From Mytilus trossulus (taxonomy: Eukaryota), in contig NC_086381.1 of NCBI RefSeq assembly GCF_036588685.1, positions 15,314,001 through 15,378,000 of the forward strand: a stretch of DNA of 64,000 nucleotides, given 5' to 3'. Below the pieces are notes generated by a model. It made no database searches, was not told the DNA's origin, and saw only the letters and a list, made by a program, of their open reading frames with translations. Below are positions 22,387 to 58,562 of this stretch, piece by piece. The stretch's first letter is position 1; the number at the start of each line of letters is the position of its first letter. Both the position numbers and the translations under genes were made by a program.

Positions 22387-24435
22387 ATATTTTCCCCACT
22401 TGTATTGTTTTCTTTAGAATTGACGTTTTCTTAGTGATACGATTACCGATACTTTACCATACAAATCTTAATCATATATCTGCAATAGCTCGATATCTAA
22501 TAAATTCAATTTTCTGTCTAAATTGAAACATAATTTAAAACTCCTTTGATAACAATAGAAAAGAAAGACAAACGGAAAGATAAACAAAATATAAAATTAC
22601 TTCGAAAGACTAAGTTATCAAACACCATAATTTATTAACCGAACAAATGATTCAATTAATGACTGATAATCGCTTGTTTCATATTGTCTAAAAGAAAGGG
22701 AACTAGATTGTTTCTTGTGATCTGACCAGGATTAGGAAGTAAAATATGTACAAATCGCAAACAAGATAATAACAATTATCTCCTAATGATTTCTTCGCTC
22801 GTAGTCATAAAGTTGTGTTTAAAACATGTCTGGATATGAAGAAATGAGGAAGTAATGTCCGACTTCTCGTTGAAATTTGAGACCAGAGAATTTTGAGACC
22901 TTCTTTATTTTACTTTTCTGCTCTAAATCGTTATAAATAAACTCACCATAGATACCAGGCGTCACGGTCATAAAGCAAGATGTTTGTACTCAGACTCGAA
23001 TATCAACCAATCAAATTGCTGGATTTCATGTTTCGAGCATGATTTTTGTGCGCAGAGTAATGAGCAAAGTTCTATGCCCTCAAGGCTAGGATTACATTTT
23101 GTATCTACGCAAGACGCGCGTTTCGTCTACAAAAGACTCATCCGGTAACAAAATTGTTCAGCGTAAATTGGCATGAATATCTTCTATTGCAATAGCATGA
23201 TGCATTTGTTCGAAGAGGATAGTTATTCGGCAAAATAATGATTCTTACTACCAGTCTTTCCTTTAAAACCCACCAGTGCTCTGCCAAATGAAGAAAATAT
23301 CCAATGACTAGATGTTAACCGACAGTCAAACAAAAAGCACCGAATTGACCTTATAGAATATCAACACACAACAAACATTATCACCAGATAAAAAAACCTT
23401 TCACTTATCAATAATAACATCAGGTGTAAGATGAACGCTCTGACCTTCAGATCAATGAGTAATGCATGCAGACAATAAATCATCTGGGAAACAACGGAAC
23501 TATGTTGCTTTGTGGATGATGCTAACAGGATTTGGAAGTACTTGTAACAATTCATCTTTATCTAAGAGTATACAAACTTTACTCTGAATCATTCAAAATT
23601 TGCACCAAGACAAGTTCACCTTGTACCTAGATAAATCTCTCAATACATCCAATATACATTATTTTAAGTAGTGCAAAGGCCTATAGGCGTATTCAGTGCG
23701 GGGGCTGGTCGAGGAAAAAAATGGTTTATTATATAGGGAATCATCCACTGAAATGATGTTCCATGTATGAAAAAATTATACGAATAACCTCGTTTCATCG
23801 ACTATTTTATTTTTCAACATTTATTGATATATAAGCTGAATGTTTATGTTTATTGTCAACAAAGTGCAACATGATAGGTGCAGCATAACTGTTCAGAACA
23901 TTATCAATCCAATTTTTAATTAACATTTTGTTTTACAGGTTGCTTTTTCATATGAAATGTTGACAAAAACCACTTCATACCAATTATATGCTGTGTTTCC
24001 TGACTAAAAGGTTATAAAAATAAGTCAAATCATATGTTGAAATCAAAAGTAATAAAAAGTAGAGGTCAATAGGGCTTACTCTGCGTTATTATAATATCAG
24101 GCCTGTTACGTCCAGACATTGATCAATGTGTTATTTTATAAACATATCGTCCTAAATATGAATGAGATAATTGCAATTGGACATTAAATAAGCAGCAGCA
24201 TTTAAATTAATTTACCTCTTATTTCTCTTGTTGGGGCACCCAAAGCAGCGGAAGTATTTATTTCCCTGAACTAACATCCTTAGAGTATTCCCTCTCACAT
24301 CATAAGTCAGAAAAAATATTTTACTGAAGAATATTAAATCATTTTATTGTTTAACCTTAGTAGTATTTAGCCAATCCTGTTTCATGTCTTTTTAGGGCAC
24401 ACAGCTCCTTACGTGTTCAAGTATATAGTATACAT

Positions 24436-25150
24436 AAAAGCAACAGTGGTATACCGCTGTTCAAAACTCAAAAAACAAAATCGGGGTAACAAACTAAAAT
24501 CGAGGGAAACGTATTAAATATAAGAGAAGAACAACGACAGAACACTAAAATGTAACACACACAGAAACGGACCAAGTATTAGACAAAATCCCACGAGAAT
24601 AACAAATATAACAACAAAACCAAATACATGAATTTGGGATAGACAAGTACCGTGACACGTCTTATCGCAATGCAAATCTACATTCAAAAATAAGAGAAAA
24701 CAAACGACGCAACGTTGAAATGTAACACACACAGAAACGAACAATTATATAACAATGGCCATATTCCTGACTTGGTACAGGACATTTTTAAAGAAAAAAT
24801 GGTGGGTTGAAGCTTGTTTTGTGGTATGCCAAACCTCGCACTTTAATGGCAATGTTAAATATAACATTGAAATGACAACATAATTACAGGAGTACAATAC
24901 AAATAAATAGGAGAACGTATAAGACAAAGAAACACATGATTAATAGATAACAAAAAGTATCAAGTTTAAAATTCAATACGCCAAAAACGCGTCTAGTCCA
25001 CACAAGACTCACCAGTGACGCCCCAGATATAAAAGATTGAAAATGAAGAAAAGTACAAATGCAATTGCACAGCACTGAAGATCAAAAGATGAAAAAGGTT
25101 GTGTCAAATACGGCTATTTTTTTATGCTTGGGATAAGAACATCCTTATTA
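24436..25150 (-). repeat. interspersed repeat; an inverted-orientation copy lies at ~30060-30700
   Basis: aacagtggtataccgctgttcaaaa..ttgtggtatgccaaacctcgcactttaatggca is the reverse complement of tgccattaaagcgggaggtttggcatgccacaa..gaacaacggtatactactgtt. Confidence 0.7.
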
Positions 25151-26550
25151 TACAGAACAGCCTTGCCTTTCACATGTTTGAGTTCGAGTGATCCCGATGA
25201 AAGGAAAACCACCAATGCAGCTGTAACGCCACGAATATACAAATTGTTTTACATTTTCTAGCACTTAACATGTAAATACAGCTGCAATATGACTGCTAGT
25301 TTCAGACGGTATAATCGACTAGGAAGTCAATGCTTTACAAATATGATTGATAAAATTTGTATTTTTTATCCTTCCTTTTTGAGTTGAGTATCTTTCCTCA
25401 TTCAAAGTTTAACACATATTGATTTTGGTTACCTGTTCATGTCCCTTTTTGACACATCGCTTCTAAAGTATTCAAGAACCTATAAATCTGTATACATTTT
25501 TATGTAAATGGCATTAACATTTTATAATTTTGAGCGTTTGGATGAAGGTTTATCAAGAAAGCTCTTCGGATTAACTAAATTTATAAAGTATTGTTTTCAT
25601 TTTATTTAATCAGGATGATGATATACTTTCATTTCACATATATGATTCGATGTTTAACACAACTGTTTTAGTTTTTCAAAAGGAGTGCCAGTTTGTTTGG
25701 GTAAACATCAGTTTACAACATAGACCTGTTATATCAACTGAAAATTCAGAGATAAACTGCTGTACCCCTATTTTTGATATTTTCACCTATTATGTTTTGT
25801 TAGCGTATCGTTGTCAATATAGAGGAATTTGAGGCGACTGCCATACAAGTGAGAGGTTTATATAGCTATAAAACCAGGTTCATTCCTCTATTTTCTAGGT
25901 AAGAAAATGCCTGTACCAAGTTAGGAATATGACAGTTGTTCAAACCGAGTCAGTTACCGTATTGACAACACTACATTTTTTTCTTCTAGAAAGACATTTA
26001 TATTGTATGCTCGAAATAAACATTTTGAAAATACATAATTATATGAAGTATTACAATGACCTATTGAAATCGAAAAGCTAAAACATGCATCTGTTCAATT
26101 TTGCGTTAGAAAGTTGAATGAATATACATTTTAAATATTATCAGTCAGTTATCACTCAATGAACCTTGTTTTACAATTCTTCTTCCACTTATATCATTTG
26201 ATGTTATGACCATATTTGTAAATCTTATTTACAATTTAAATGTTACGATAAGACACTGAATGGTTGGAAAATCAAACAACACATTGCAATTTTCATGTGA
26301 AATTGATAAAGATAAAATAATGTAAATAATAAAACAAACAATAAAAACAATGGAAGTTGTATGAACCATGTTAGTTTTCTTTTTGTATTCAAAGCCTTTT
26401 GCGTATTTTCGCAATCATAATACAATGAAATGAAGGCGAACCAACGTCATACACCTGATGGTCAACGACAGGGACTACCCTTTTACACCATTGTGGGATT
26501 AACAGATGTTTAGGTCACTTATCAATATTCAACGCAGTTTTACATTTTAA

Positions 26551-26700
26551 ATACGTATGTTGCGAAGAGATTACAGAATGTGTTATCTTATAGTAAACTT
26601 ATTAATCCGCGTGTATTCACTGATATATCCGTCCCTTTTCCTATAAATATGGAAGCACATGTAAGATTGTATACAAACAAAAGCACGTGGAGAACTAGGT
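26551..26700 (+). promoter_or_regulatory. LPMO3 TATA core promoter and short non-coding first exon
   Basis: atacgtatgttgcgaagaga..atatccgt..ccTATAAATAtggaagcacat..aaacaaaagcacgtggagaa..ag|GTAAG (TATA 26642-26649, donor 26699). The acceptor at 27420-27421 lies just before the ATG. Confidence 0.72.
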
Positions 26701-27430
26701 AAGCAATAATAAGTTGGTTTGCCTCTTAGCTTTATATATTACAATATAACATGTATTGTCATACTACAAGATCAAAAACTATATATTATGTAAATCATTT
26801 TTGTTCTATATGTACGCATTTTTCGCAAAACGATGATATAAAGAAACTGGCATCTACGAATTAATCAAATTTATTTGTGTAATTTAGTTGACAAAATATT
26901 TATGTGAACAACACATTATTAATAATATTTTATATACAGGTTAAGTATGCTTCGTATAGCTGCAACTTTCACTCAATCTTTGATCTTCAAAATTAGCTGA
27001 TATCTTTCCCAGTATTGATGTAGACGAGGAAACATAGAGCCCGTAATGTTGTAATATTGACACATGTATAATCTTAAGGCCGTCCCATTATTGCATGACA
27101 CACATGATTTTTTTTCATCATTGTTCTAATTAGGGCCAACATTGGCTCAAGGTTCAATCCTCATTTTATCATTTTGCTCCACATAATTAGCTCCGGCCTC
27201 CTTTGAGCAATGCATTTATTCCGGGTTCTAACAATAAGGTTTTGGGCTACAGATATTGCGATGATGCTTTGAGCTCCTAGGCAACCATGTAACTAGTGCC
27301 TTGCCAATAATATAATTATCTTGTATTGATTGCTTACTTGTTGTTAAAACAACTAAAACTTGATATATTTATTTCTATAATGAATATGTAAGCACTTTTA
27401 TTTATCATTTGTACTTTACAGGAAAAGAAT

Positions 27431-29156
27431 ATGTTGACACAGATTTATACAGTATGCACATTTGTTGCTGTCGTCAACGGCCACGGCAGACTTATCTCCC
27501 CTCCTGGAAGATCCACAATGTGGCGCTATGGATACAACACACCTAAAAATTACAACGATAACCAGATGTCTTGTGGAGGGTTTTATGTAAGTTGTTATAG
27601 ATATCAAACTATTTTTTAACTAGAAATTAACAAATATTTTAACAAAGAATTTATAAAGTTTATTGCTACAATATATATAAAAGAAAGGTATTCCCTTTTC
27701 AATTATAATAAGAAAAATGTGCATCATTGATAAACTAGTATTATAATAGCTTCTGTATAATGTTTATCATCCTTGTCCTTATACCATGCATTTAATATAA
27801 CAGTATTTCTTTCTTTCAGAAACAATGGACACTAAATGGAGGAAAATGTGGCGTATGTGGTGACCCTTGGAACGAGGCTCATGACAACGAGGCTGGAAGA
27901 AAATATGCAACAGGCACCATTGTTAGTCAATATAACACAGGACAAAATATTCAGGTTAAAGTTCAAATCACTGCTACCCATCGTGGATATTTTGAGTTCC
28001 GTCTTTGCCCGGTTAACAATCCACGTCAGCCAGCCACTCAAGCCTGTCTAGATAGAAATGTACTAAAGCAATCAAATGGACAGTCCAAATTCTATGAACC
28101 AGGAGCAATCGGAACATATACAGTTGATCTTATTCTACCGCAAGGTTTAACCTGTACGCAATGTGTATTACAGTGGAAATGGAATACTGGTAAGATAATC
28201 TGATTGAATTTGTGCACAGTTGTCTGATACATATACATTCACTTTTTAATTTGATAATCACTATGTTACACTCAAAATTGAGAATGTATGTCATTTAAAG
28301 TTTTAACAATATTTTGATATATAAGGTCACATATTCATTAACGCAAAAAGACAGGCTTGAACTCACATGTCTTACAGGTTTTGCCAAATTTTAGTAATTA
28401 TCTATCTCTTTAATATATATGAAGAACAACGTCAATCGATATAAAATGCTATTGGAGCCCATTTTAACGACTCAATTAAAGCATTAGGTATTTATTTGCC
28501 TTTTAATAACGTTATATTTATATATAAGCTTGTATGTGAAACACAAATATCTTTGTCTTAATAATCCACAGCTGGTACATATATATCGATGAAGAGAGAA
28601 TGTTTGCCTTTGTATTATGATATTTTGTTTCTGCAAATTCGGGCTTTTGGGTTTTATTACTATTTTTAAGTATGCAACAATACTTATCAGAAAATATGTA
28701 GAATCATTAATAACACACAGAACTAATTAGTTACGTTATGCTATCAATTACAATTATCTGGCATACTCAATTTTATTTTATAATGTGTTCAGAACAATAG
28801 GATATGAAAATTGTTGTAATACTTTAACAAGTATTTATTTTCTTTTTGCAGGGAATTCATATAACTGTGATAACAATCATAAATGTTGTATTGGTTGTGG
28901 ACCACAAGAACAGTTTTATGGGTGTGCAGATATAGCTATTTCATCGTCTGGGACAAGTCAGTTTTTAAATACTGGTGTTCACCAAGGACGCCCAGTGGGG
29001 TTTTTACCCATTTCAGGACAAAACGTTGGAACATGCCAGGCAACCCCACTGTTCAAAAGTCGTTATAGATATGCCGATCAATATTGTGTATCTCAATGCA
29101 AACAGAACAAATGTCCACCACGCATATACTGCACCGATGCTTGTAGATCTCACTAA
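27431..29156 (+). CDS. LPMO3: AA15-family LPMO, ~276 aa, with C-terminal 6-Cys module; exons 27431-27586, 27820-28189, 28852-29156
   Basis: Signal MLTQIYTVCTFVAVVNG|HGRLISPPGRSTMWR, then TATHRGYFEFRLC, CVLQWKWNTGN and QEQFYGCADI. Tail CQATPLFKSRYRYADQYCVSQCKQNKCPPRIYCTDACRSH*. All splice sites are GT-AG and in frame. Confidence 0.94.
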
Positions 29157-30059
29157 AATCTCTTTTTGCAAAATCTATACTCATTTTACTCGAATGTTAT
29201 TTGATACAAACTATTTTTTTTATAATTGTATCTATTTCTATACATATATTTATTTATTGTTATTGCATAATTATTGTTTGTGGTTTTGTTTTATATTAAA
29301 ATCATTATTTTATAAACGCATCGTCTTTTTATATACTTTTTGCATACATATTGCTATTTACTAGTAAGTACATTGTATTGTCATCCATGAGAGTGGTGAG
29401 ATAAGAGAGACACAACTACAGTTCAATTCATATATTAACAACACATGTATTTTACATTTAAATGTAAGTGTGTCAGAAATCGTATCTGATATTCTTACTC
29501 AGTCATAATAACCTTCCGTCATTACAGAACTGAACATAGAAATAACACGACGGGTGCTGTAAGCTGTTCAGGAAATGCTTACCCTTCCTGAGCACCTGAA
29601 CTCACTCCCGGTTTTTAGATCGTGTTGTTTCTGATTTATTATTTATAAGTGTTGACGTAAATGTCCCTTGGCTTTGTGAGCCCTTGTTTACTTCTTGGTT
29701 TTGATTGTTATTGTCTAACTACCGATTTCGTCAGATAGAATACGAAAAAAATAATCCAAATTTACAAAACCTTTTCGTGATGACTTTTTTTGTCATGACG
29801 AAATATACATTGAAACCATAAGATATAACAATGAAAGCAATGTTTTGTCCTCTAGGATATACGACAAATATATTTGTTTATGTAATAACATAAGGGATCA
29901 TATAGATAAAAGTATAATATTCATCTACATATATAAACAACAACTGTAAATTCGTGCAACGTTTATTCAAAATATTGATAGAACATATCCTATAATTTAT
30001 ATGAGACGTCACTTTGGAAATTGCATTGACTATGTCTACCAGGGCTGTGATTTTGTAAT

Positions 30060-30700
30060 GTATTGGTTTTTTATTCCATAGCTAGTCACCACTTCAGTTA
30101 AATCATGTATATCTACTATATAATCAATTTTTAAAATTTACTGTTTGCAAAACTATGTCTTATTCTTGATAATAATGATTTTTTTGTCCCAGGCGGATAA
30201 CCCTGGCCTTACAACGTTTTGGAACTTTTGGTCCTCGACGATCCGTAACTTGGTAGTTGTTTTTTTTTACATCTGAGCATAGTTTTGGCGTCTGGCGTAT
30301 AAAAATATTTTTAACCTGTTACCTTTGGATGGCTATTATTCGTTGTTTCTCTGTCCTATATTTTCTCCCATTTCTCTGTTTATGTATTGTTACCCTGTCG
30401 TGTAATGGTGTCATGTTAATGTTGAAATTAAGACTGCCATTAAAGCGGGAGGTTTGGCATGCCACAAAATCAGGTTCCACCCACCATTTTTTCATAAAAT
30501 GCCTTGTACCAAGTCAGAAAAATGGCCATTGTTACATTATAGTTCGTTTCTCTCTGTGTTACGTTTCGGTGTTGTGTCTCTGTTGTGTCGTAGTTCTCTT
30601 ATATTTGATACGTTTCCCTCAGTTTTAGTTTGTAACCCGGATTTTTTTCCCCTATCGATTTATGAATTTTGAACAACGGTATACTACTGTTCCTTTATCT
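30060..30700 (+). repeat. interspersed repeat (same family as 24436-25150)
   Basis: Reverse-complement similarity to 24436-25150; boundaries are approximate. Confidence 0.65.
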
Positions 30701-33326
30701 ATAATAACATAGTAAATGGATTAAAATATGTCTGACTGATTTAAATATCGAATAAGGAAATTTGGATTAAATCAGTTATAAAGTACTAATTTAAAGTGTA
30801 TCCAAATGTTTTTATTAAGACATCACCCATTATGCGAATATATACATAAGTGAAAGTTTACAATAACACGAAATCACAACGATGGCCACCGTAAAACTAA
30901 TTAGTAAGGATTGCAATCATTTGACCCTTTTACTGAAGTACACATAGTGGTTGTATGCATGAGGGTAGCGTATTTTGATTAATAAACTTCATGCTGAAAA
31001 ATGGAAAGTTCATAAACTTGTATCAAAAAGAGCCATGGCCAATTTGTCGGCGATTTGTTTCATTCGATTAGATAGGTAAATCATGCTTTAAATAGCCCGA
31101 TAGATGTTAAATATAGTACATGATAATACGTCACGTCATCTATTTTCATACCTTGAACAGGTATTCCTACATAAACAAGGCCAAGACTATTGATTTTTTA
31201 ATATTGATTTTATTTTATTATTAACATCCTTTATGCAAGGTGCCATACCACGTAACATGCCAAGGAGCCAAATAACACGGAACAAATTCAAATCTTGATT
31301 GTCTCATTCTAAATATATGTATATCTGTACTTTTCCTGGTCTTTTAAGGTGTTATCGTCTATAAGATAAGATACTACATGTTTATATTTTAACCCGAGAA
31401 CATCTTTAATACCGTCAGTAAGTCATAGATCACCCTGTGTTACTGACACATGTTATATTGCCTTTTCTGTCATTTTAACAAATCGGACCTTCGTTGTGAT
31501 ACAGATACAACAGCTTCTTGATGTTTTACCTACAATCACGATTTGTAGTGTAATTGATTGTTCTGTTGTGTTGTTTTATTTTCTGATGACTGAAGTACCT
31601 GTGTAGGGACGGTGGTAAACATTTCAGAACTAGTATCTAAACAGTTTGTGAATTGGCGACAAAGTTGTTGTTGACTGCATTTGTTACATATGATACCATG
31701 TTCAAAAAAGGTTTCGAAAAATAGTTTGTGTTGTTTTGAAACTTGTATACAATGGCCTTATTGTAAGTTGTGTGTATATAACCCCCGCAACATGTAGGTT
31801 TCATTGCTATAGAATTAATTCTCGTGTTATTGGTTATCAGTTTGACGGCAGTTGGTCCTTGGATATATGTAATAAATGTAACCACATTAATAGAAAGTAA
31901 GTCAAGAGTATGGATAGTCTAGGAATGCACACAATAAGCAATACATTTTTTTTCTTTGATACATGTAAAATGATAAACTAGTAAACTATATAGTCAAAAT
32001 GAACCAGAATGACTCTATGAATTAAGCAAACATCCGAAAAAATATGATAGAAATATTAAAATTTAATATAACAATACAAAAAATGCAAATATTCTGAGCG
32101 AGATTCGAACCCTTTCTTTAAAACCATCATTTATTAGTAGTTCTGTGCTCTACTAATGGAGCTACGGCTTATACATATCTCTCTTATTAAGAATCTATAT
32201 CGGTACAATTTATCGATGTTACATTTTTTTCTTTAAAAAGTAGTTTTTTATGTAATAAGGACACTCTAAACCAATTTCATTTTTGAGGGAACAAGTTGTA
32301 TGAATAACAACAGTCATAAAAAGTATAACTTTTTTTTGGTTTGAAATGTCCTTCTTAGGGGATTCCATGTTTTTCTCACCTAAAAACACCTGAAAATCCG
32401 CATATTGGACTTTCATCCTTTTTTAGGGTCAAATTAACTTTTGATCACACATGTCATAATATATGTAAATCTAGATATTGATCAAAAAGCATTTTTAATT
32501 TTTGTTTTTATAGTAAATTTTATTCTTTCGGCACTTTTTGAAATTGGCCCTTCTGTGAAAAAAATCATCGATAAATTGGCCCTACCTCTTTAAGTTTTAT
32601 TAGATTTTCGTTTGAAATCGTAAATCTGTGTCCATTACGAGGAAAACATCAAGATTCTAGTTTCGGTAATATTTGTAATGTCAAGTTCACGGGGATATAT
32701 GAGATGCAATCATTTAACTAAAGCGTGCACTTACTATTCCCCATGCGTCATACACGATATTAAGCTCCAACAATTTAAAAACAACTAATTTCAATTTTAA
32801 CCAAACTTTTCAAATGATTACAAAATTAGCATATTCTATAGAGTATATAGTAAACTTATTTCACAAACCTACAATTCAACTGTACAGCTGAAACTTATCT
32901 CCGCTTAAACAAAGTGTACTCTCATTAAAATGTAGCTACGGACAAACCACTGTGTAGTGAACAAATAAAACGTAATAAAAGTTTATTTTTAATTTTTATC
33001 ATTTTTAAATAAAAATCGCACAAACGCTTGTCGATACGATATTACTTCAAACAAATAAATTAATCAGACAAAATTTGGTTTTAAGTTAATATTTTTATCC
33101 GTCTCGATAGATGGTGTTCAGCTATATAGTTGTCATAATTAAATGTTAAAACCAAAATAGTCTAAATTGATAATAAAAAGAACAATAGTAGTCAAATTCA
33201 CGTCCTTGTATAATCTATTTTTAGCGTATTGAATTATAAAGGCAGCAATATTCTTAAAAGTTTAAAGTTAATACATGGTCGGAGTAACAAACAGTTTGTG
33301 TAAAAAATATTAAAAAGGTGATCAGT

Positions 33327-46056: not shown

Positions 46057-48464
46057 ATGTGGACACACTTTACAAAATGTATACTCATTTACTTGCCTTT
46101 TATTTGATACAAACTTTATTTTGTTTACAATGTTTTTATAAATGTATTTATTGTTATTGCATAATTATCGTTTTTTATAAATAAAATCGTTTATTGATAG
46201 ATTTTTTTCCCAAATACAAACAACTAAGTAACGGTCTGCAGAGGTGATAAAGGGCTATGAATTTGACAAAAGTTTAAATGGTAGTAGTAATACACCTATC
46301 AATGAATATATAATGCTGTAAAGAACGTTTTGTAACATTTCCATCGAAATTGATTAAAGTGCCCATATATTTGTAGAAATTGCACAAAAGGAACTAAAAA
46401 ATTAACAGCATGCATGTGTTAATTGTTTAAAGATTTGAATAAAGAAAAAATATTTATAACACATAATTGGGGTGGAAATTGGGGTCTCTCCCAATCATTT
46501 CCTTTTGGGAGGAAATGCTAGTTTCTAATCAAGTGTAATTAATTGAACAATTAAATTCACTTCTCGTCAGTTTTGTGCATTGTATGCATTTTCAACTTGA
46601 TCATGTGCAAAATTTGTTAACATTTAGACTTTCAATAATCACCTCTTCTCTCAAAGTTAATTTGCAATTCGTTAGATGTGTTTTATCATTAAGTTTTGTC
46701 GTTTTGATTTTCCTCGGAGTTCAGTATTTCTGTGATTTTACTTTTTTGTCATCAATGTAGTTATCTTATATTCGACCATAATAACTATTTTACTTTTGAA
46801 TTTACAAATGATAGAAGAATAAGAAAATTTTAAATCTATAGTTAGTTTGTTTTTATATTCAATCCGATGTTGTGTTGCTTAAGTTGTTTTGAGTGGTATA
46901 CAGTCGAATTGTAGGTTAACTTATTTTGTTACAGCTGATCAACAAGATTTCTAATTTACAACCCATCGGGGTTGAAGTGTGTTACTACCTTAAATTGATA
47001 CGGCAATTTTGTGTATAATGAACGTACAATACGTTAATACGATAAAATAAAGAAGCATGAGTAAAGGTCCCGCTTCGGTTCAAACAAAATGCGTTTGTTT
47101 AAATTAAATGTACATGGAATCAGTTGTTCTAACCCGATATAACTCCTATTTGATATTTGAATGAGATTATCACTAGCCGATTTGTCAGATTTATACACGT
47201 ATCTATCTATTTGATACCATCAAAAGCAATATGTATGAAAAAAAATTCGATTAATATACACGTATGCATCAACACTCAAGTACTGCCTTCGATACTGACA
47301 GTTTACTAAGCTAGATTAGTTTTGATAAGAACAAAATAATGAAACATAAATCAACTAACTTATCAAATAATAAAGTGGGTGGGTTTTGATATAGCCTGTC
47401 CGATAAAAAGTTGTGTATCCAAGAGGTATTTGCTTAAATTATTTATCAGGTTAGTAATAAGGAAATCGTTTTATCTCATTTGTTTCCAAACAAGGTTATA
47501 TCTAAATAGTTCAGAGATGGAGAAGGTCAATGCTCTTTAACCTAAGTGTGGTATCTTGTTATTACGGATTTAAATACAGAAAACTCGAAATCTTCTTGCA
47601 TGATGAATTATGTGAAGTCTTTGAACTTCATTGGTTATGTCAAAAGATTCGAACAAGAAAGACAAGATTTCAGTTACTTATGAGTAATGCATATATATTT
47701 AATGGTGCAAAAAGTAAAATCACAAAAATGAACTCCGAGGAAAATTAAAAACCAATCCCTAGTCAAATGTCAAAATAAAAACTCAGACACATAAAACGAA
47801 TGGATAGCAACTGTCATGTTCATGACTTAGTACAAAAAAGGTGGATTGAATATAAAATAAAGAGGTGTGGTATGCTACCTATGAGAAAATTAACCCCTCA
47901 GAAATTGCACATGCAACTAAAAACATTTAAAAAAATCAATGAAAAAATAGAAGAAAGAGAGAAATCAACGAAAAAAATAAATACTAGGCTGCTGGCTTTA
48001 GCTTTTGTGGAAAAGGCGTATAAAGAATGTGATGAGGTTAAACATGTTTAAGATCAGTAAAACCATTTATCCTTTAACCAAGTCTTGCCTAATGGAATTC
48101 TCCTTTATAGCCTCAACTACGACAAACTGAAAAATTAAAAAATCAAACCCAGAAGAACCCTAGTCTAATTCAAATCCATTCAAACTGTCAGGAAATTATT
48201 TGTTGAACTTTTATCATTTTTCTATGTTGTCTTAAAAATGAGATATAGAGAGGAACTGTCTCAACAGGCTAGTTCATATTTTCAAAGTGAATGCTTAGAG
48301 GTAAATATTTGGATGACTGTAATATTTCTTTTTATTTTGGCAGCTTTTGTTTTTATGTCAGAATTCCTTCGTTTGGACATAAATGTTAATTTTGCATGTT
48401 TTGCCAGATGAGCAATTGAGTCCTGAATTATGGAACGCCAACACTGTCTTATTATGCCCATTTT

Positions 48465-49035
48465 TCATTATATGTTGTGCATTTACATTTATATGATGTG
48501 CATTTACCTTTATATGATGTGCACTTGTCATCATATGATGTGCAAACACCTTTATATGATGTGCAAATATCCTTATATGATGTGCGAACATCCTTATATG
48601 ATGTGCAAACATCATAATATGATGTGCAAACATACTTATATGATGCGCATATATACTTATATGATGTGCAAACATCATAATATGATGTGCAAACATACTT
48701 ATATGATGCGCATATATACTTATATGATGTGCAAATGTACGTATATGATGTGCAAACAATCTTATATGATGTGAAAATATACTTATATTATGTTGAAAGA
48801 TCCTTATATGATGTGCAAATATACTTATATGCTGTGCAAATATACCTATATGCTGTGCAAATATACTTATATGATATGTACATATCATTATATGATGTGC
48901 CGTTTCCCTTATATTCTGTGCAAACATCTTTATATGCTGTGCTTGTGTCATTATATTATGTGCTTGTAATCTTATATTATGTGGTTTTATTTACTTCATT
49001 ATATGATGTCGAAACGTCATTATATGATGTGCTTT
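48465..49035 (+). repeat. 21-bp minisatellite array (consensus ~TTATATGATGTGCAAACATAC) in the left TIR
   Basis: tatatgatgtgc recurs every 21 bp. This explains the repetitive HHI/MMCK/YDVQ ORFs in the track. Confidence 0.92.
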
Positions 49036-50714
49036 CATCGTCGTTATGGTCAATGAACATGATTACGATTAGAATGATTACTGTCTAAGTCATAACTGAT
49101 TCCGATCTGCTTCTGCGGAGTAACCGTTACTACTAATTAGGATCAAATCTGTAGCTACCGTTTAGAAAATGGTTGAGACTTGAGATAAACCTTGCCATGT
49201 TAGTACCTCGTTTTAAGATGCAAAAAATCACATCTGATATTGTTGGAAAATTGTAAAAATATATATGAATTGCAAAGTTTGGTTTAAATGACGGGTCTTT
49301 AATAATAAACATATTCATACGAAGTCTACAATACGGTTAAGGTTATTAAATTTAATAGATAATTCTTTTATGTCATGCTCTATGAACGTTTTAACGAGGG
49401 AAGGCATTATATTTGTCAATTTCAGTTTACCTAACGTAAGCATTTTTTCTATATTTTTAAAAGATAATACACGATTTTAAGTATTGTCATTTATGTAAAT
49501 ATTCAATTTGCCTTTCTGATCATTTTAGCTGTTCTTCTATATATTCTCAAGATAGACACAAACAATTGGGAAAAAATGGACTCTGGTAGAGTAATGGTTC
49601 ATATAAGGAACCGGTCATTTGAAAAAAAAAGAGGGGATAGGAAAAAATAAAGGGGGCCTTTCATTTTATCATTTTTGGAATGGAAAAATGACATTCAATT
49701 TTATATAGTTATAAATTTGCCGCGGTATAATGTTATGGCGAATTCTTCGTCAACCGTAGGCATCAATCTTTACGCCTCGTTTCGCTCACCTGAATTGTTA
49801 AAACCTGAAAATTTAGTTTCAACAATTTCTTATCAGAGAATTTTTCGTCTGTAGCTATTATTGAATGAAGGCGTGGTAAAAATTAATAAAACCACAAACG
49901 GCAAATTCAAACTAAGTTCCCTGAAGTCGCAAACAACTTTCATACTTCAGTACTTTGATTATATATGTTCTTGTCTATACCTTGTAAGAAAAGGTGTCTC
50001 TATTATTAGTTATCAAGATAATAGCCAATAAGACAATACAACTCTGAAAAGCAAAAATTGCCCAAAAAGAACCTTTACTATAGAGTATAATTGAGACACA
50101 TTGCACTATTTGTTTTTTTTTTAAATCTATTATGTTTCCAGGGTAAACACAAAATATTAAAATATTAAAAGCCGCTGCCGTAAATCTTCACTTTGAAAAA
50201 TTCAAAACACCACTCTCTATTTGTAAGAGAACAACAGGTCTCAGTAAAAAATAAATAAATGCAGTGTTTTAAGTTCATTTAGACACCAGATTTAAAACGC
50301 TCAATTCTCCGGTTTTGTTGGATAGATACACACCTTCAAAAATTTGAAGGCTGAAATTTCATTGGCTGATGTAATATATACAAGGACAGAAAATAAAATG
50401 ACGTGTTGTCAGATCTCTGTATTCAAAGCTTCAACAGATGATCTGTACATTATATATTAATAAGTAAATGTGGTAGACACCGACTCTAGTTTTAGGGAAG
50501 GAGCACGTGTATTCCTTGTTCGAAATTAATAAACACAAAAAAAAAAACAAAAAAAAACATGGTTTATTTTTTTTTTTAAGTTTCATCATTGTTTTATTTT
50601 TTCCTCATTTTAAATGGAAACAAACTATTTCGCTTCCCTTCTGAAATAGATAAAATCTCTTTCAAGAAATTTAGAATCAAACATTTACAAAACAACTTGC
50701 CCCCCCCCCCTTTT

Positions 50715-51060
50715 CGTCGTAGCATGTTCGCCTTGAGTGAGAGAGGTCGTGGGTTCGAACCCCGGCCGGGTCAAAACCAAAGACTTAAAACTTCATATTT
50801 ACATGCTGCTTCCCAGCTAATTATATATAGTATGCGGAATTAAGGATTAAGAGCAAAAGCTGGTTGGCTCGGAAGCAGAAAAATGTGTCCGGGTAAGGTG
50901 ATTTAACGTCTTCCTTCGAAATGCTACCTTTTGAACTAGCATGTTAAAAAATCCGGCTCAGGGTGTCGGTCTAGTACAAAACAAGGTTAATATGCATATC
51001 ACATTAACATGTTCTTGTACGAATATGCATATATCAATTTGCCGCTGGACCTCAGGAATC
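50715..51060 (+). mobile_element. tRNA-derived SINE
   Basis: B-box-like ggtcgtgggttcgaacccc, followed by the SINE body ggtcaaaaccaaagact..ttaagagcaaaagctggttggctcgg..aatgtgtccg. Confidence 0.6.
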
Positions 51061-51197
51061 CACCCATAATCATCTATACATGTAGTTGAAACTGTGAAAT
51101 ATATGCACAAAACATGACAAAAAGCTGCACGTAAATGTAATGCACCGAGTTCAGCTTCATTCCATATCTACTTTAATCAATTTCGGGTGAAAGTGAT

Positions 51198-51610
51198 GGG
51201 CGCTCGGTGGTCGAGTGGTTACATTGTCATTTCGGGGCCTTTTATAGCTGAATATGCGTAATGGGCTTTGATCATTGTTGAAGGCCGTACGGTGACCTAT
51301 AATTGTTAATTTCTGTGTCATTTTGACCTCTTGTGGAGAGTTGTCTCTTTAGCAGTCATACCACATCTTCTTTTTTATAAGTAGTCGAACTGCTGTATCA
51401 CTAACATGTCAACACTTAGGTGTGCGATTTCAAATTCCGCACGTGGCAGGTAAGCTCGATTCAATCTTAATTGACCAGAATTGTCTGTTTTCCAAACGAA
51501 GGTCAGGGGGTCTCTCCGGGCACTTCGGCTTTCTCCACCAATATAAACTCACCGCCACGAAATAGCATAAAAGTGTTGAAAGTGGCGCTAAATAACAGTC
51601 AATCAATAAT
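51198..51610 (+). mobile_element. tRNA-derived SINE with V-domain-like core, interrupted by a nested repeat (~51221-51380)
   Basis: A-box-like ctcggtggtcgagtggtt, core tctctccgggcacttcggctttctccaccaat, and tail ttgaaagtggcgctaaat..caatcaat. Confidence 0.6.
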
Positions 51611-51854
51611 CCATACCGGTATACTTATGGCCTCAAAATCTATTTATTTGGTCTCACAAAGTCAATGTATGACATCAGTATACAGAGATAAAAATAATAA
51701 CTATTTACAGTATATACAAAACAAGAGAGAGAGGTTTCAAAATTACTGAGTCAGCTGGAGGACAAACACACGTGTTTATATTTTTTTTTATAAACGAACA
51801 AGCTGAAGTTGATATTTTACAGAAATCTTATACATCCTTCCTGTTTTCAAGTTT

Positions 51855-52290
51855 TCGTACATGGCTTAAAGCCTTATCGGATAAATGTTTTTTGTCATAT
51901 TAAAATTTCCCGTTTTAGTAACAACAATTCCCAAATACTTTTATTGTTTTATCATCTCAATGTTAGTATCATTGTAAGAAAAAACAAAAAAAAACACAAA
52001 GACTTTAATTTTGTCAACTTTCCTTTCAAGTTCCAAGCCTTACAATAATCATGGAAAGCATTGAGTTGAGTCTGCAGGTCCTGTGCTGTTTCAGCCAACA
52101 ACACCGTGTCTTCTGCAAACAATATAACAAAACACTTAAGATATATTTCTAATTCTCTTTCCAGATCTTCTGTTATAGTTCTTTTAGTCCTGTAATATTT
52201 TTAGTCACTAAGAAACTAATTTAGTCAATCAAAAGTAAATAAAATAGGAAAGGTGATAAGTTTTCTCCTTGTCGAACACCATTGTCACAA
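51855..52290 (-). mobile_element. decayed LINE reverse transcriptase fragment
   Basis: Minus-strand translation gives GVRQGENLSPFLF..*, ILFAEDTVLLAETAQDLQTQLNAFHDYCKAWNLK (degenerate YADD) and KYLGIVV, with stops and frameshifts. Confidence 0.8.
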
Positions 52291-54439
52291 GCGGGCAAAG
52301 TATTCCGAATTATAAGTACTACCGTGTATCATCGGCACAGCGGATATAGCTTTATAGGTACTTCGAAGCGTGAAAAACTATATACCGTACATTCATTTAA
52401 CTATGCACCGTACAGAAGGATTCATTTGGTCAGCTAAACACAACGCTTCTTGTCGGAATAAAATATCAAAAAATAACTTATGTACAAAATATTTCAATGC
52501 CAATTATTGAAACAGCTATACTTATTACGCACAAACAGTGGCCTTCTATCAGAAAAAGAGTTGCAATGAATATTGAATCATATCGGATGAGACGAGCGCC
52601 AACTTCTTTGACAAGTATGTGCACATATTTTAGTAAGGGTTCTTGTTTTGGGCGATAGTGAGACTTCTCTATTCACCACCCTACGACCAAATCATATCTT
52701 TAAACAACAAATACGTTTAGATTGAAGTACACATTGATATAATGTAAACAAAACAAAGATTTTCGTACCGTGTCAGACGAAAAACCGATCACGCCCCCTT
52801 GGTAAGTACCTATATCCGCTGTACCGATGATACACGTAGATTCCAGCGAGTGGGCAAGTGTTGAAACAAAGAGTGATGACACAGTAATAAGGTGGACACA
52901 GTAATGACAAAGTTAATCCTTTTTATTCTATTTTTGTAAGGAGACGAAAAAGAGGAACAAAATGCAAAAGACGGGCGTCACCCCATTCATCTTTGTTGGA
53001 AAATAAAAATATTAAATAACCTAAATTGGAAAAAGTGTGGCAAAATGTGATTTTCAGTGGGTTTTTTCCCCCTTTTAACTCAATAACTGTATCGTCTACG
53101 TAAAATCCGTTGCCATTATACCGAAAAGGATCAAAATAAGTACCACAATGGGGAAAATCTGATGTAATCGGACGAAAAATTAAATCTAAAACACTTCATC
53201 AGGAATCAACCCCTTGTCTCTCAGAAATCGTTGTCGCTACTCCAAATCTGTCGACATACTAGTACTCATGTTTCAGAATTTTATTAGCAATTAAAAAAAT
53301 CTCCATTAAAATAAGATGAAAATAAACAATCTGTATATGCCAATATGTGCTCATTGTTGAAGACCGTATGGTGACCTATAGTTATTAATTTCTGTGTCAT
53401 TTGGTCTATTGTAGGGAGTTGTCTCTTAGCAAAGATACCACTTTTTCTTTTCTTATAATTACCCACATAGCCATTTCGCATTTCGCGGGCACTACGTCGA
53501 CTAAGCTTGCAATCTTCGAAATTGGATATTTTCTCACATAATTGGCGTTTTCTGTGGTAAAAGATAAGTTCAAAGACAAGTTAAATGTAAAAAACACTAC
53601 ATGTAAACGTCATATCACAAATATTTCCGACTTGGTATGGTTTTAGAGGAGTTGCGGCTCAATGGAATCGGTCTCTTCCTTTAGTGGCATAGATGATATG
53701 ATATACTAGATTAATATCATTGTACATATCCAATACTACATTTTGCATCTTACCATTTACAGATTAATATTATTCAATAACATTTTATGAAACAAACCAT
53801 CTCGCCATATTATTTATCAGTAGATAATTTTATAGCTATTGTTATGAAATATATATTTTTGAAACAGACTGTGATTTCAATCTTGTCTTTTGCAATGAAT
53901 AGAAATAAGCAGATGTGGTATGAGAGACAACTCTCCATCTAAGTTATAATTTGTAAGAGGAAACAATCATATACCTGTATCAAGTCAGGAATATGACAGT
54001 TGTTATCCATTCGTTTGATGTGTTTGGACTTTTGATTTTGCCTTTTGAATTTGGACTTTCCTTTTTGAATTTTCCTCGGAGTTCAGTATTTTTGTGTTTT
54101 TACTTTTTATAGGTCATAGTACGATCTTCAACACGGAGCCTATGCTCAAACTGGATAGCAAGCTATAAAAGGCTCTTACATTTGTTATCATTTTCTCCAC
54201 AGCCGGGAATTTCTTCAACTAGCTCCTGTATTAACTGATCTTAATCTTCAACCGAAATGTTTGAAACGTTGATTTTGTTCAATTGCTTTGTCTCATTTTC
54301 CCTATAAATTGCACATTCTCTAGCGATAGATACATATTTGAGCCGGGTTAATAGTTTACAGAAGCAGATCGGAATCAGTTATGACGTAGACAGTAATCAT
54401 TCTAATCGTAATCATGTTCATTGACCATAACGACGATGA

Positions 54440-54970
54440 AAGCACATCATATAATGACGTTTCGACATCATATATAATGAAGTAAACCTAACCACATAAT
54501 ATAAGATTACAAGCACATAATATAATGACACAACCACATCATATAAAGATGTTTGCACGTAATATAAAGAAAACTGCACATCATATAATGATATGTACAC
54601 ACCATATAATGATCTTTGTACATCATATAAGGATCTTTGTACATAATATAAGTACATTTGCACATCATATAATAATGTTTGCACATCATATAAGAATGTT
54701 TGCACATCATATAAGTACATTTGCACATCATATAAGTATACTTGCACATCATATAAGTATATATGCACATCATATAAGTATGTTTGCACATAACATAATG
54801 ATTTTTGCACATCATATAAGGATATTTGTACATCATATTAGGATATGTGCACATTATATAAAGATATTTGCACATCATATAAAGGTGTTTGCACATCATA
54901 TAATGACAAGTGCACATCATATAAAGGTAAAAGCACATCATATAAAGGTAAATGCACATCATATAATGAA
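54440..54970 (-). repeat. 21-bp minisatellite array in the right TIR (reverse complement of 48465-49035)
   Basis: gcacatcatata recurs every 21 bp. Confidence 0.92.
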
Positions 54971-55376
54971 AATGGTCATAACAAGACAGTGTTGGCGTTC
55001 CATACTGAATGGTTAAATTACTCATCCTTCTACAATGTTCTAAGCTGAACATAACTTTTACTTCTTACGATCACGTCTGAAAATACAATTTTTGTACATA
55101 CAATTTAGAATTGTCTTAAAGCTTTTGCTGGATGCGACTCTAAATTGAAAAAAAATCCACTTCAATATATTGATGTCATATGTATTTCAATCCGTTTAAA
55201 TAAGAGATGAGATTCACCAAAGAGGTGTAGAATAGTAGGATGCAATTATTGTATTTAGATTTGTATTTATTAAATATGTTTAACAAAAACATTTAAGAAA
55301 AGAAATTTAAAGCAACAATGAATTTTAATAGCATCACAGGTCAATTGTCTTTGGTCTATTTTTTTTGCATATTGTA

Positions 55377-55565: not shown

Positions 55566-56024
55566 TATTTCCTTAATTTGATTGGCAGATTATTCGTATC
55601 GTTTTGGGCATACATCCTTTAAATTTAATAAAAATCATTAATTACACCTTTCATTTCTAACAAAACAATTTAATTATTTCCTGATAGATAATTACTATAC
55701 TGAGAACTAAAAGTAAAATTTCAATTGATAAGAGTGTTCGGACATTATCTACATCAATTGTTCAACGTTTGATGATATAGATTTTTTTACAACGTAAACA
55801 AGAACTTTAATACATATTTCAATTGCCAAGATAAAATATTACTACGCAAGCTTAAAATAATATCCTAAACTGATCGTAGATAAAACTGTAGTACTTACAC
55901 TGGTGTCCTAAAATAGGCTATTTTAAGTGAGGTGACATGCGATCAGAATATTCTAAAATAATTGAGTGTAAATATAGTGAGGATGTAGTTTCCTGCTGTT
56001 GTAGTATCAAATAACTCTAGGAGT

Positions 56025-58562
56025 ATGGATGGGAGATTGTATCTAATTGTGACAGTGACATTTTATATGAAAGCAAAATTGGCATTTGCTCAAGATTGTG
56101 ATATACGTGATTTGTTTGCCAATTGCTCAAAGCGTGATTTATCAAACATTCCTCAGAATCTTCCTAAAAATATAACAGAACTGGACTTATCGGAAAATTT
56201 CATAACCGAAATAGGAGCCAAAACATTCCACAGATATCGTAAGCTAATTCATTTAAACCTTGCAAACAACAAAATAAACTCATTGAACAGTGATGCTTTT
56301 TCGGGCTTAAACGAAACAAAGGTGCTTATTCTAACAGAAAATCGATTAAATCATACAAAATATCCAAACAATGTTTTTCGTCCACTGAAGAACTTGCAAG
56401 AACTTTACCTAAATCGCAACATGAGGAAACCTTCCCCGTTCGAACCATTTTGTCATGGTAAACCTTGCAGATATTCCGATAAAGCTTTTAGCTGGCTGGT
56501 CAATCTGAATGTTCTGTCAATAGATTTGTGTGAAAATCCAGACTTCGGCGATGGTTTTCTAAATATGAAAAAATTGCAAAAGCTTACTTTTGATTATTGC
56601 TTAGTTTGTGAATTAAGTAATATAACATTTAGAAACTTTAAACATTCAAACGTCACTGTATTGAACCTTAGTAGATGCGAACTATATAAAATGAGTGCAA
56701 CTATTGAAGCTGGAATATTCAATCCGTTTTCAAATGTTACAAGTCTAGATTTATCAAACTCGTACTTCAGCTTGAAGCACGCCCTGAAGCTCTTGTTTCC
56801 ATTCCGCAATAAAACAATGGACATGATAAATTTCCATCGTGTAAGTCGAGGTTCTAGAACTATTCCAGAAAATCCATTTAAAATTGTTATTACAAGTGAT
56901 ATGATACAATATTTAAAAACTATATGTGTGAAAACTATTATCTTGTCATACAATGGAATTGTTGATGTTAAACCTAACTCACTATTTGTTCATGATCACC
57001 CACAGTGCTTTGAAAATATCATAATGTCAGCGAATAGTTTTTCAGTGGAATATAATCAGCAATATATGGAGGTTATTAAATTATCAAACGCCGTCATAAA
57101 TCTGCGTCTCTTCGATTATTCGTACGTCCCGCTTCAGTTTTCAGACATGAAATTTATTCTCCCGCCAAATTCAATGATCGTAAACAATCATTTTCCGTCA
57201 CTGTATTCAGAAACAAGACACCCAACTAATATGACGTTTAAACTGCCACCCAAACTGGAAATTTTACGTTTCAGTTATGTTATGACAGGGTCCAGGCTGT
57301 TTAGTTTGATATTAAAAAATACTAAAGCTCTGAAATACTTAGATTTATCACACTTTGCCTTTCAAGAATTTCCTGATATTTTTATGTCCGAAGGTAACGT
57401 GTTAGAACACGTAGATTTTTCAGGAATAGATTCAAGACTTTATGTTGATAAGGGAGTTATTGAACTAATGCGAGACGTAAAAACTATCCTCTTACGTGAC
57501 GCAAACTTAGATCTCACATTCAGAGAAAGGAAAAATGTCTTCAAGTATTTTGGAAACAGTACAACTAGTATTGATATTTCTTATAATCATCTAGTGACCC
57601 TTCCGAGGACATTTGGTGTGATATCGAATTTAGAACACCTTAATTTATCTTTCAACTCATTTCGAAATTTTCCGAAGTCTTTGACATCACTATCTAATCT
57701 CAAAATAGTAGACCTGAGATTTAATCAGTTGCTCACTCTCAACAAAATGGTTACACAATGGGCGGACAAGGTTTTCCAGAAAACAAATTTATCAGTACTG
57801 TTAAAAGGAAATGAATTTGCTTGCTCTTGTGATAACCGGGACTTTTTGAAATGGTTAACGCAAACAAAGGTTGTGTTGGATACAAATAGAACTTATTATT
57901 GCCAATTTGCCAATGGAACGAGAACCACCACTAGTTTCGTTGTAGAACGATTCCATGATACGTTTTCAGATTGCGATGCAATCGCTTGGTTACGTATAGG
58001 TGTCATTTGCATCGTTTCGTCCTTTGTCATCATTTGTTTATCGGCTGTAATTTATCAATTTCGATGGAGAATGGCATATTTTTTCTATAGAAAACTAAAA
58101 ATGAACTATTCAGTCGAATCGAACGACGTTGAATTTCAATATGACATCTTCGTTGCATATGCATCCGATTGCTGTGAATGGCTCATAGGTTCACTCCTAC
58201 CAATAATAGAAGAGAAATGGAAATTGAGTGTTTGTGTTAAAGATCGTGACTTCCCAGTTGGGGTAGACCGAGCAGATACTGTCATCAATAGTATGCGAAA
58301 TAGTAAATTTATCATTTTTATAATTACACCAGGCTTCATCAAAAGGAAATGGGGAAAGTTCGAGATTGAAATGGCTAAATATGAAATGTTCGAGCAAAGA
58401 AAACAAAAGCGTATCATTGTCCTAATGAAAGATGGCACGTCAAAAGAAGACGTTCCTATTGAATTTAGTATTATGTGGAAAGATGTAATTATGATCGAAT
58501 GGCCTGGTGATGATATGAACACAGAGAATGTGTGGTATGATTTAAAATTGCAATTAGGTTGA
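56025..58562 (+). CDS. TLR-B: intronless Toll-like receptor, 845 aa, paralogue of TLR-A
   Basis: Same architecture as TLR-A: LRRNT CSKRDLSNIPQNLP, LRRs, NEFACSC, TM WLRIGVICIVSSFVIICLSAVIY, and TIR motifs YDIFVAY / DRDFPVG / KWGKFE. Confidence 0.95.
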   Translation: MDGRLYLIVTVTFYMKAKLAFAQDCDIRDLFANCSKRDLSNIPQNLPKNITELDLSENFITEIGAKTFHRYRKLIHLNLANNKINSLNSDAFSGLNETKVLILTENRLNHTKYPNNVFRPLKNLQELYLNRNMRKPSPFEPFCHGKPCRYSDKAFSWLVNLNVLSIDLCENPDFGDGFLNMKKLQKLTFDYCLVCELSNITFRNFKHSNVTVLNLSRCELYKMSATIEAGIFNPFSNVTSLDLSNSYFSLKHALKLLFPFRNKTMDMINFHRVSRGSRTIPENPFKIVITSDMIQYLKTICVKTIILSYNGIVDVKPNSLFVHDHPQCFENIIMSANSFSVEYNQQYMEVIKLSNAVINLRLFDYSYVPLQFSDMKFILPPNSMIVNNHFPSLYSETRHPTNMTFKLPPKLEILRFSYVMTGSRLFSLILKNTKALKYLDLSHFAFQEFPDIFMSEGNVLEHVDFSGIDSRLYVDKGVIELMRDVKTILLRDANLDLTFRERKNVFKYFGNSTTSIDISYNHLVTLPRTFGVISNLEHLNLSFNSFRNFPKSLTSLSNLKIVDLRFNQLLTLNKMVTQWADKVFQKTNLSVLLKGNEFACSCDNRDFLKWLTQTKVVLDTNRTYYCQFANGTRTTTSFVVERFHDTFSDCDAIAWLRIGVICIVSSFVIICLSAVIYQFRWRMAYFFYRKLKMNYSVESNDVEFQYDIFVAYASDCCEWLIGSLLPIIEEKWKLSVCVKDRDFPVGVDRADTVINSMRNSKFIIFIITPGFIKRKWGKFEIEMAKYEMFEQRKQKRIIVLMKDGTSKEDVPIEFSIMWKDVIMIEWPGDDMNTENVWYDLKLQLG

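Follow-up and report, generated by a model that had tools for sequence, protein, structure and literature searches.

An alternating cluster of AA15 mono-oxygenase and Toll-like receptor genes in Mytilus trossulus, with gene blocks of two ages

INTRODUCTION

TLR2 receives chitin oligomers from CHIT1 (PMC11911531), and cello-oligosaccharides oxidised by AA9 enzymes evoke immunity in Arabidopsis (PMC8196058). We describe here a locus of the mussel Mytilus trossulus in which genes for AA15 lytic polysaccharide mono-oxygenases (LPMOs) alternate with genes for Toll-like receptors (TLRs). It lies in a window of 64,000 nucleotides (nt), the whole stretch of DNA analysed (RefSeq assembly GCF_036588685.1, NC_086381.1, forward strand, positions 15,314,001 to 15,378,000), which is held by a chromosome-scale contig (C9) of the 1.3-Gb assembly; coordinates below are those of the window. 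The initial annotation of this DNA proposed that enzyme and receptor had been duplicated and retained as a unit, possibly because the receptor senses products of the enzyme, with accidental hitch-hiking as the fallback. The logic so proposed is that of the CHIT1-TLR2 and AA9-plant systems, where a secreted enzyme frees soluble fragments that a leucine-rich-repeat (LRR) receptor detects. The link was made there by binding and signalling assays, whereas the mussel case is known from gene adjacency alone, and to our knowledge the enzyme and receptor genes of those two systems are not neighbours.

Tandem arrays undergo birth-and-death evolution by unequal crossing-over. The mussel locus resembles such arrays in its repeating units, the mosaic ages of its blocks, its differences in copy number between species and its transposon-filled spacers; it differs in that the repeating unit holds two unrelated gene families.

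Each family has a described point of reference. The copper site of the AA15 enzyme TdAA15A is made by His1, His91 and Tyr184, chitin-specific members have an axial Phe, AA15 genes have already been reported in molluscs, and about one third of the members carry C-terminal extensions (Sabbadin et al. 2018, PMC5823890). Mussel TLRs are encoded by single-exon genes in a vastly enlarged repertoire, where tandem copies belonging to one subfamily can be specific to a species; their tandem duplication has been studied, and their ectodomain is the more variable part (Saco et al. 2023, PMC10279657).

We read the M. trossulus locus, with a probability of about 0.7, as a lineage-specific Mytilus tandem cluster that was reshaped by later local exchange and in which enzyme and receptor are adjacent by descent, and not as a demonstrated enzyme-receptor module. 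The fallback of the initial annotation is on these terms its better part.

GENE ORDER AND AGES OF THE DUPLICATIONS

Four genes follow one another on the plus strand in the order LPMO3, TLR-A, LPMO4, TLR-B, as had been claimed, and all four frames are intact. LPMO3 (exons 27431-27586, 27820-28189 and 28852-29156) and LPMO4 (exons 43688-43843, 44552-44921 and 45752-46056) each encode 276 amino acids (aa), and their translations are identical to RefSeq proteins XP_063399002 and XP_063400764, respectively. TLR-A (33327-35840, 837 aa) and TLR-B (56025-58562, 845 aa) are single-exon genes for proteins with LRR, transmembrane (TM) and TIR parts, as found with Pfam; the first 836 residues of XP_063399681 are identical to TLR-A, and TLR-B is contained in the same RefSeq protein residue for residue. 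Across the whole genome LPMO3 has no closer copy than LPMO4, nor LPMO4 than LPMO3, at 89.4% nt and 90% aa identity, so that a relationship proposed from the window alone holds genome-wide, and the same is true of TLR-A and TLR-B. The TLRs do align end to end, with 71-72% aa and 78% nt identity.

The two pairs differ in age. Synonymous divergence (dS) was estimated by the Nei-Gojobori method with bootstrap 95% intervals, and other estimators agree. For LPMO3/4 dS is 0.40 (0.30-0.52), with a divergence K at four-fold sites of 0.28 and values of 0.36, 0.41 and 0.40 for the three exons. For TLR-A/B dS is 0.81 (0.67-0.96) and four-fold-site K is 0.56, the ectodomain giving 0.81 and the TM and TIR parts 0.79. 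Two further LPMO genes of the window are more distant still: dS between LPMO2 and LPMO3/4 is about 1.0 (0.75-1.5; four-fold-site K 0.76-0.81), and between LPMO1 and the other LPMOs it is saturated. By these figures the LPMO blocks have about half the age of the TLR blocks, and this twofold gap is robust. Recent gene conversion between LPMO3 and LPMO4 was considered and rejected, since dS is even across the exons and the two coding sequences (CDSs) nowhere share an identical run of more than 34 nt.

Protein trees show the same twofold gap. LPMO3, LPMO4, TLR-A and TLR-B each form a clade of their own (support 95/86, 94/91, 100/100 and 99/99) with the same five species, M. californianus, M. coruscus, M. 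trossulus, M. edulis and M. galloprovincialis; it follows that both duplications are older than the Mytilus radiation, with no later concerted evolution. The stems that lead from duplication to speciation measure 0.020 and 0.026 in the two LPMO genes and 0.18 and 0.11 in the two TLR genes, while crown depths are comparable, and from branch lengths the duplication lies at about 1.4 crown depths for the LPMO pair and about 3.0 for the TLR pair. A cruder check on nucleotides agrees: relative to the window, RNA contigs from a related species diverge by 4.7% (LPMO3) and 5.8% (TLR-A), against 10.6% and 22% between the respective paralogues.

A one-step duplication of enzyme and receptor as the unit first proposed is at odds with these very different ages, the dS intervals lying apart. 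It could be upheld if the twofold gap reflected gene-specific mutation or constraint instead of age, and the alternating order, the common strand of all four genes, the fact that both duplications predate the same speciation events and a weak colinear patch surviving 5' of the TLRs (see below) would then all be explained. We nevertheless consider it unlikely. Four-fold sites give the same ratio as dS, and LPMO introns, which are neutral and about 71% identical between LPMO3 and LPMO4 in parts of both introns, agree with the dS of the LPMOs, not with that of the TLRs. The ratio of stem to crown normalises a gene-specific rate, yet it keeps the two pairs apart, and orthologues of the two families have diverged to a similar extent where the paralogues have not. 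Moreover the CpG-depleted genes of the locus are the LPMOs, for which the general picture of gene-body methylation in invertebrates predicts faster, not slower, silent change.

SHARED FLANKS AND THE PATH OF DUPLICATION

Colinear blocks were taken from a self-BLAST of the window, and smaller patches from more sensitive local alignments compared with shuffled controls. On the plus strand, the homology of the LPMO genes takes in the promoter and first exon, an exon of 5' untranslated region (UTR), with 26300-26694 matching 42828-43238 at 72-76% identity and with a conserved TATAAATA, a TATA box and a GT donor downstream. It continues over exon 1 (27404-27592 versus 43661-43849, 90%), exon 2 (27814-28198 versus 44546-44930, 92%) and exon 3 with the 3'UTR (28835-29279 versus 45736-46173, 82%). 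The 3'UTR by itself (29165-29279 versus 46069-46173) is 88% identical, and homology stops at 29279/46173. The coding exons measure 156/370/305 nt in both genes, so the shared exon sizes, promoter and 3'UTR described initially are all real.

Homology further upstream is patchy. The stretch 23427-23540 matches 40008-40121 (75% over 111 nt, score 41 versus 9+-2 for shuffles), and 24943-25147 matches 40919-41123 (74% over 199 nt, far above shuffles), the latter adjoining a repeat family. Among the three upstream matches listed in the initial annotation, the first of these and one at 26364-26500 versus 42889-43034 stand, and the third (22727-22750 versus 39658-39681) is marginal, with 20/24 bases identical. 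For the TLRs the coding block (33351-35840 versus 56055-58562, plus strand) is 78% identical, and a single patch on the same strand just 5' of it (33156-33273 versus 55859-55974, 66% over 115 nt, score 27 versus 15+-2 for shuffles) is the sole flank homology that remains between TLR-A and TLR-B; the first 600 nt of their 3' flanks show none.

From the LPMO stop codon to the TLR ATG there are 4170 nt in the first copy and 9968 nt in the second, or about 3350 nt once a 6.6-kb insertion is taken out. This insertion (48407-55026) is bounded by inverted repeats (48407-49171 versus 55026-54314, 81%). The first spacer consists mostly of a high-copy repeat (29400-32800), which is related to 24426-24983 and which in all four RNA runs described below has a summed contig depth of hundreds to about 26000, in many variants. 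No homology above shuffled controls was found between the two LPMO-to-TLR spacers. The net lengths are similar, as had been pointed out, but this is uninformative, because one spacer is mostly repeat, the other contains the 6.6-kb element and the two share no homology. The inverted repeats of the element, about 750 bp each, consist of short tandem units and show shifted self-matches and long stop-free frames. A repeat family, with copies about 80% identical, occurs downstream of TLR-A (36057-36178 and 36991-37271) and at 45219-45508; since this last copy lies inside intron 2 of LPMO4, it partly explains the difference in intron size between LPMO3 and LPMO4.

The alternating order probably comes from local segmental duplication before the Mytilus species split, with the two types of block coalescing at different times. 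As to the exact path, we infer two histories that would leave such a pattern. In the first, an [LPMO-TLR] tandem array would have been followed by unequal exchange that renewed only the LPMO-bearing part, roughly 3-6 kb. A three-unit intermediate from which one unit was lost, for example, would have the inter-unit region and the LPMO renewed up to a breakpoint in the spacer, and this scenario fits because homology ends abruptly at the positions given above. In the second history there would have been a second local duplication, of the LPMO only. Either would account for the present data.

The second history can be taken further, to independent duplications throughout: a TLR tandem would have come first, and about half as long ago a segment of roughly 6 kb with the LPMO would have been copied between the TLRs, no two-gene unit ever being duplicated. 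The younger homology does form one contiguous colinear block (about 23.4-29.3 versus 40.0-46.2 kb) with its abrupt end at the LPMO 3'UTR, and in other species the locus appears to have undergone further duplications of the LPMO alone (next section). Such a path nevertheless requires the new copy to land exactly between the TLRs and not beside its source, and unequal exchange in a two-unit array yields the same mosaic without that coincidence; we regard it as possible but doubtful.

THE LOCUS IN OTHER MYTILUS AND THE GENOME BACKGROUND

Gene order in other species was read from consecutive accession or locus numbers and from shared contigs, not from DNA. In M. coruscus the LPMOs CAC5395108, 110 and 111 come before a TLR-A split over 112 and 113, an LPMO (114) and TLR-B (115), and a single 1.56-Mb contig carries the whole set. 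In M. edulis CAG2226626-630 have the same order reversed on one 390-kb contig, and XP_071120156-160 are LPMO2, LPMO3, TLR-A, LPMO4 and TLR-B; VDI46767-770 of M. galloprovincialis have this order too. The same gene order is thereby implied for these three species. For M. californianus the LPMOs LOC127705899-905 and the TLRs XP_052066215/216 are on one chromosome record, which suggests the same neighbourhood without giving the order. Within Mytilus the LPMO-TLR arrangement is both of long standing and stable, each species having inherited one ancestral state. With the genes only 4-10 kb apart, conservation within the genus is what descent alone predicts.

There are extra LPMO4-like copies in two of these species, with two such proteins in M. 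galloprovincialis and a third, a fragment, in M. californianus, and no matching extra TLR is found among the proteins listed for either. At this locus the LPMOs thus seem to be duplicated by themselves. One public model of M. galloprovincialis, VDI46770.1 (768 aa), is a fusion in which LPMO2-like and LPMO1-like domains are joined by a non-LPMO stretch.

The M. trossulus genome has 23 AA15 exon matches, 19 of them beyond the window at about 17 separate loci, and first-look candidates number 717 for TLR-like and 499 for TIR sequences. About 200 places out of 500-700 TIR/TLR candidates were scored, and none of these lies within 50 kb of another AA15 locus. The sole other AA15 sequence found near any of the scored TLRs is an exon at C3:29856054-29856416, 58-65 kb from two TLR frames (C3:29914123-29923845), a distance that is about the chance level in a genome with that many TIR/TLR candidates. 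No TLR relic was found beside LPMO1 or LPMO2 at E<1.

PROMOTERS, TRANSCRIPTS AND THE FUSED GENE MODEL

Each of the two LPMO genes has its own conserved promoter block with TATAAATA and TATA box and its own 5' exon about 750 nt upstream of the exon with the ATG. LPMO2 and LPMO3, which stand head-to-head, share an upstream block of 142 nt (20827-20968 versus 26690-26549, 79%), and the LPMO2 counterpart of the LPMO3 promoter block is part of the RefSeq transcript model of LPMO2. At the TLRs an AG acceptor is found 32-36 nt before each ATG (32 nt for TLR-A).

The ratio of observed to expected CpG is 0.48-0.61 in the LPMO CDSs and 0.97-1.02 in the TLR CDSs, the window average being 0.83. Invertebrate genes that are methylated and broadly expressed can usually be told from inducible ones by their CpG depletion. 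The ratios suggest that the neighbouring LPMOs and TLRs are under different regimes of germline methylation and expression.

RNA was surveyed by aligning assembled contigs of four public runs to 27800-33799, which shows presence, not absence. The material of the runs behaves as RNA, because unique introns and unique stretches of the spacer have zero depth. Runs X1 and X2 have contigs of TLR-A and none of LPMO3; X8 has LPMO3 and an LPMO4-like contig and none of TLR-A; X3 has both LPMO3 and TLR-A. No joint between LPMO3 and TLR-A occurs in the contigs of the four runs over this interval. The splice between exons 2 and 3 of LPMO3 (GT..AG, 662 nt skipped) is present in contigs of X3 and X8.

The public annotation covers 33327-58562 with one 'uncharacterized protein' of 1936 aa, XP_063399681.1, in which NCBI has fused TLR-A, most of LPMO4 and TLR-B. 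Its parts are TLR-A without the stop, LPMO4 from 10 codons before the ATG to an internal GT in exon 3, and TLR-B from 12 codons before the ATG. At its junctions the model splices from a GT just ahead of the TLR-A stop to an AG near 43.66 kb, and from the GT within LPMO4 exon 3 to an AG lying 36 nt upstream of the TLR-B start codon. We reject the fusion as a real protein, since the LPMO would follow a cytoplasmic TIR and would have no free N-terminal histidine; XP_063399681 is probably a model artefact or reflects read-through RNA.

THE LPMO GENES

Judged by sequence and by predicted structure, LPMO3 and LPMO4 are true members of AA15, the family to which they had been assigned at first sight. 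A search of PDB sequences with exon 2 returned a single match, TdAA15A of Thermobia (5MSZ, E 1.9e-36, 49% identity). The AlphaFold model (confidence, pLDDT, 84) superposes on 5MSZ with a root-mean-square deviation of 1.2 Å and a target-normalised TM-score of 0.94, and Foldseek gives 5MSZ at E 1e-25, its next match being an AA13 structure at E 8e-7. By both sequence and fold the mussel proteins are thus nearer to AA15 than to AA9, AA10, AA11 or AA13. The Pfam domain LPMO_10 spans residues 18-203, with profile position 1 at residue 18.

The mussel proteins share with TdAA15A a signal peptide followed directly by the first histidine, the second histidine of the copper brace, conserved cysteines and the fold. 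His18, encoded in exon 1, is preceded by a hydrophobic leader and matches the first residue of mature TdAA15A in the alignment. The second histidine is found in ATH106RGYFEF, which aligns with APH91IGFFEF of TdAA15A and has Ala two residues before the His. The GCGPQEQFYGCADIAI motif in exon 3, of the class GCGPQE-x-[YF], puts Phe197 at the position of Tyr184, and His106 and Phe197 are at least 90% conserved in 36 animal homologues. LPMO3 and LPMO4 are thus predicted to be secreted copper mono-oxygenases, in which cleavage of the signal peptide would expose His18 and His106 would complete the brace.

Two features set the mussel enzymes apart from TdAA15A. One is the predicted axial Phe197 in place of Tyr184, in which they resemble the chitin-specific TdAA15B and AA10 enzymes; chitin is a candidate substrate, and the axial Phe would be as in chitin-active LPMOs. 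The other is a Cys-rich C-terminal tail of 73 aa (28950-29153 and 45850-46053), which follows the catalytic domain, contains six cysteines and has no match in Pfam. Its predicted structure is a disordered linker (residues 211-232, pLDDT <50) and then a small helical module. The tail is the faster evolving part, with a ratio of nonsynonymous to synonymous divergence (dN/dS) of about 0.35 versus 0.07 in the catalytic domain. A literature search yielded no usable account of AA15 in the mantle, shell or digestive gland of molluscs.

A tblastn search with the large LPMO exon finds four LPMO copies in the window, LPMO3 and LPMO4 on the plus strand and, upstream of LPMO3, LPMO1 and LPMO2 on the minus strand. 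LPMO1, the oldest AA15 paralogue of the cluster by its saturated dS, spans 5830-8483 (exon matches 8483-8328, 7039-6653 and 5946-5830). RefSeq XP_063399680 is the protein to which the exons of LPMO2 (18747-20858) map. The left edge of the window has part of a Cys-loop receptor gene, an exon (3070-3954, plus strand) with the Pfam ligand-binding and transmembrane domains of neurotransmitter-gated ion channels.

THE TLR GENES

LRR_8, LRR_1, LRR_4, TIR and TIR_2 are all found by Pfam in both TLR-A and TLR-B, in agreement with their initial assignment as LRR-TIR receptors, and a hydrophobic stretch, WLRIGVICIVSSFV(V/I)ICLSA, lies between the LRR and TIR parts. As far as sequence can tell, both are type I membrane receptors in which one TM helix connects an LRR ectodomain to a TIR domain, and they presumably signal via MyD88. 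The nonsynonymous divergence (dN) between them is 0.20 in the ectodomain versus 0.06 in the TM and TIR parts.

In being single-exon genes for proteins of more than 800 aa with LRR, TM and TIR parts and a more variable ectodomain, TLR-A and TLR-B are like the rest of the described Mytilus repertoire (PMC10279657). They differ from it as an isolated pair, the third-best TLR in the genome being only 37-38% identical to them, and in being interleaved with a non-immune family instead of forming a pure TLR array. TLR-B is 89% identical to M. californianus XP_052066215, and it clusters and groups in the tree with the M. galloprovincialis 'Toll-like receptor d' (MgTLR-d, AFU48616.1), of which it is the orthologue; no paper on MgTLR-d expression was found in our literature search. 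MgTLR-v of M. galloprovincialis is 52% identical to TLR-A, as against the 37-38% of the best third match in this assembly, and the corresponding gap in M. trossulus may be due to presence/absence variation or to a gap in the assembly.

ENZYME AND RECEPTOR AS A SENSING MODULE

It remains to weigh the idea that the cluster is a functional module for cleaving and sensing chitin, in which a TLR recognises oxidised oligosaccharides made by the LPMO and selection keeps the genes linked and duplicating together. The idea is mechanistically conceivable, because enzyme-made glycan fragments do feed pattern receptors elsewhere (PMC11911531, PMC8196058), and the putative axial Phe197 fits LPMOs of the chitin type (PMC5823890). 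The gene order implied across the genus and the purifying selection on both gene pairs would also be expected of such a module.

Most of our observations point the other way, none of the tests made lends support to a coupling of enzyme and receptor, and we judge the module to be very improbable. The LPMO and TLR pairs coalesce at different times. RNA contigs of LPMO3 and TLR-A are discordant in their presence among runs, with no common transcript joint seen; each LPMO has a promoter of its own, and the two families are unlike in CpG signature. The pairing does not recur at the other AA15 loci in our partial census, there is no receptor relic beside either of the older LPMOs, and LPMO4 has undergone a further duplication in other species without an additional TLR among the proteins listed. 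A literature search found no animal LPMO-TLR pairing. Animal genomes, besides, seldom cluster functionally coupled genes. Just as remote is the more specific form in which selection would have kept the alternation while TLR-A and TLR-B detected oxidised chitin oligomers released by LPMO3 and LPMO4 from fungi, food or shell matrix, together with its weaker variant, in which read-through of TLR-A, LPMO4 and TLR-B would couple their regulation. The specific form would make the locus an animal parallel, with linked genes, to the sensing of LPMO products by plants.

We therefore return to a tandem cluster whose members are neighbours by descent, against which the following should be set. Strict alternation of LPMO and TLR comes most simply from duplication of a two-gene unit, and its order across Mytilus possibly leaves room for some unit duplication, perhaps with selection on linkage. 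Synonymous rates can differ between genes. The TIR census is partial, as given above; the expression data are assembled contigs from four coded runs that carry no tissue label, and record presence only; and the fused 1936-aa model of NCBI might reflect read-through transcripts.

CONCLUSIONS

The locus appears to be an ordinary tandem cluster, specific to its lineage, in a genome rich in TLRs, and leaves a small residual probability that enzyme and receptor are functionally linked. Were the functional reading true, the hundreds of orphan bivalve TLRs would include a first receptor with a known route of ligand generation, and a molluscan AA15 enzyme would have its first physiological role. The analysis also puts right a model in the public annotation in which genes had been fused. 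The locus is a clean example of a tandem array gaining blocks of different age, and its two intact, well-defined AA15 genes of predicted chitin type and its isolated pair of TLRs are convenient targets for tests of expression and binding.

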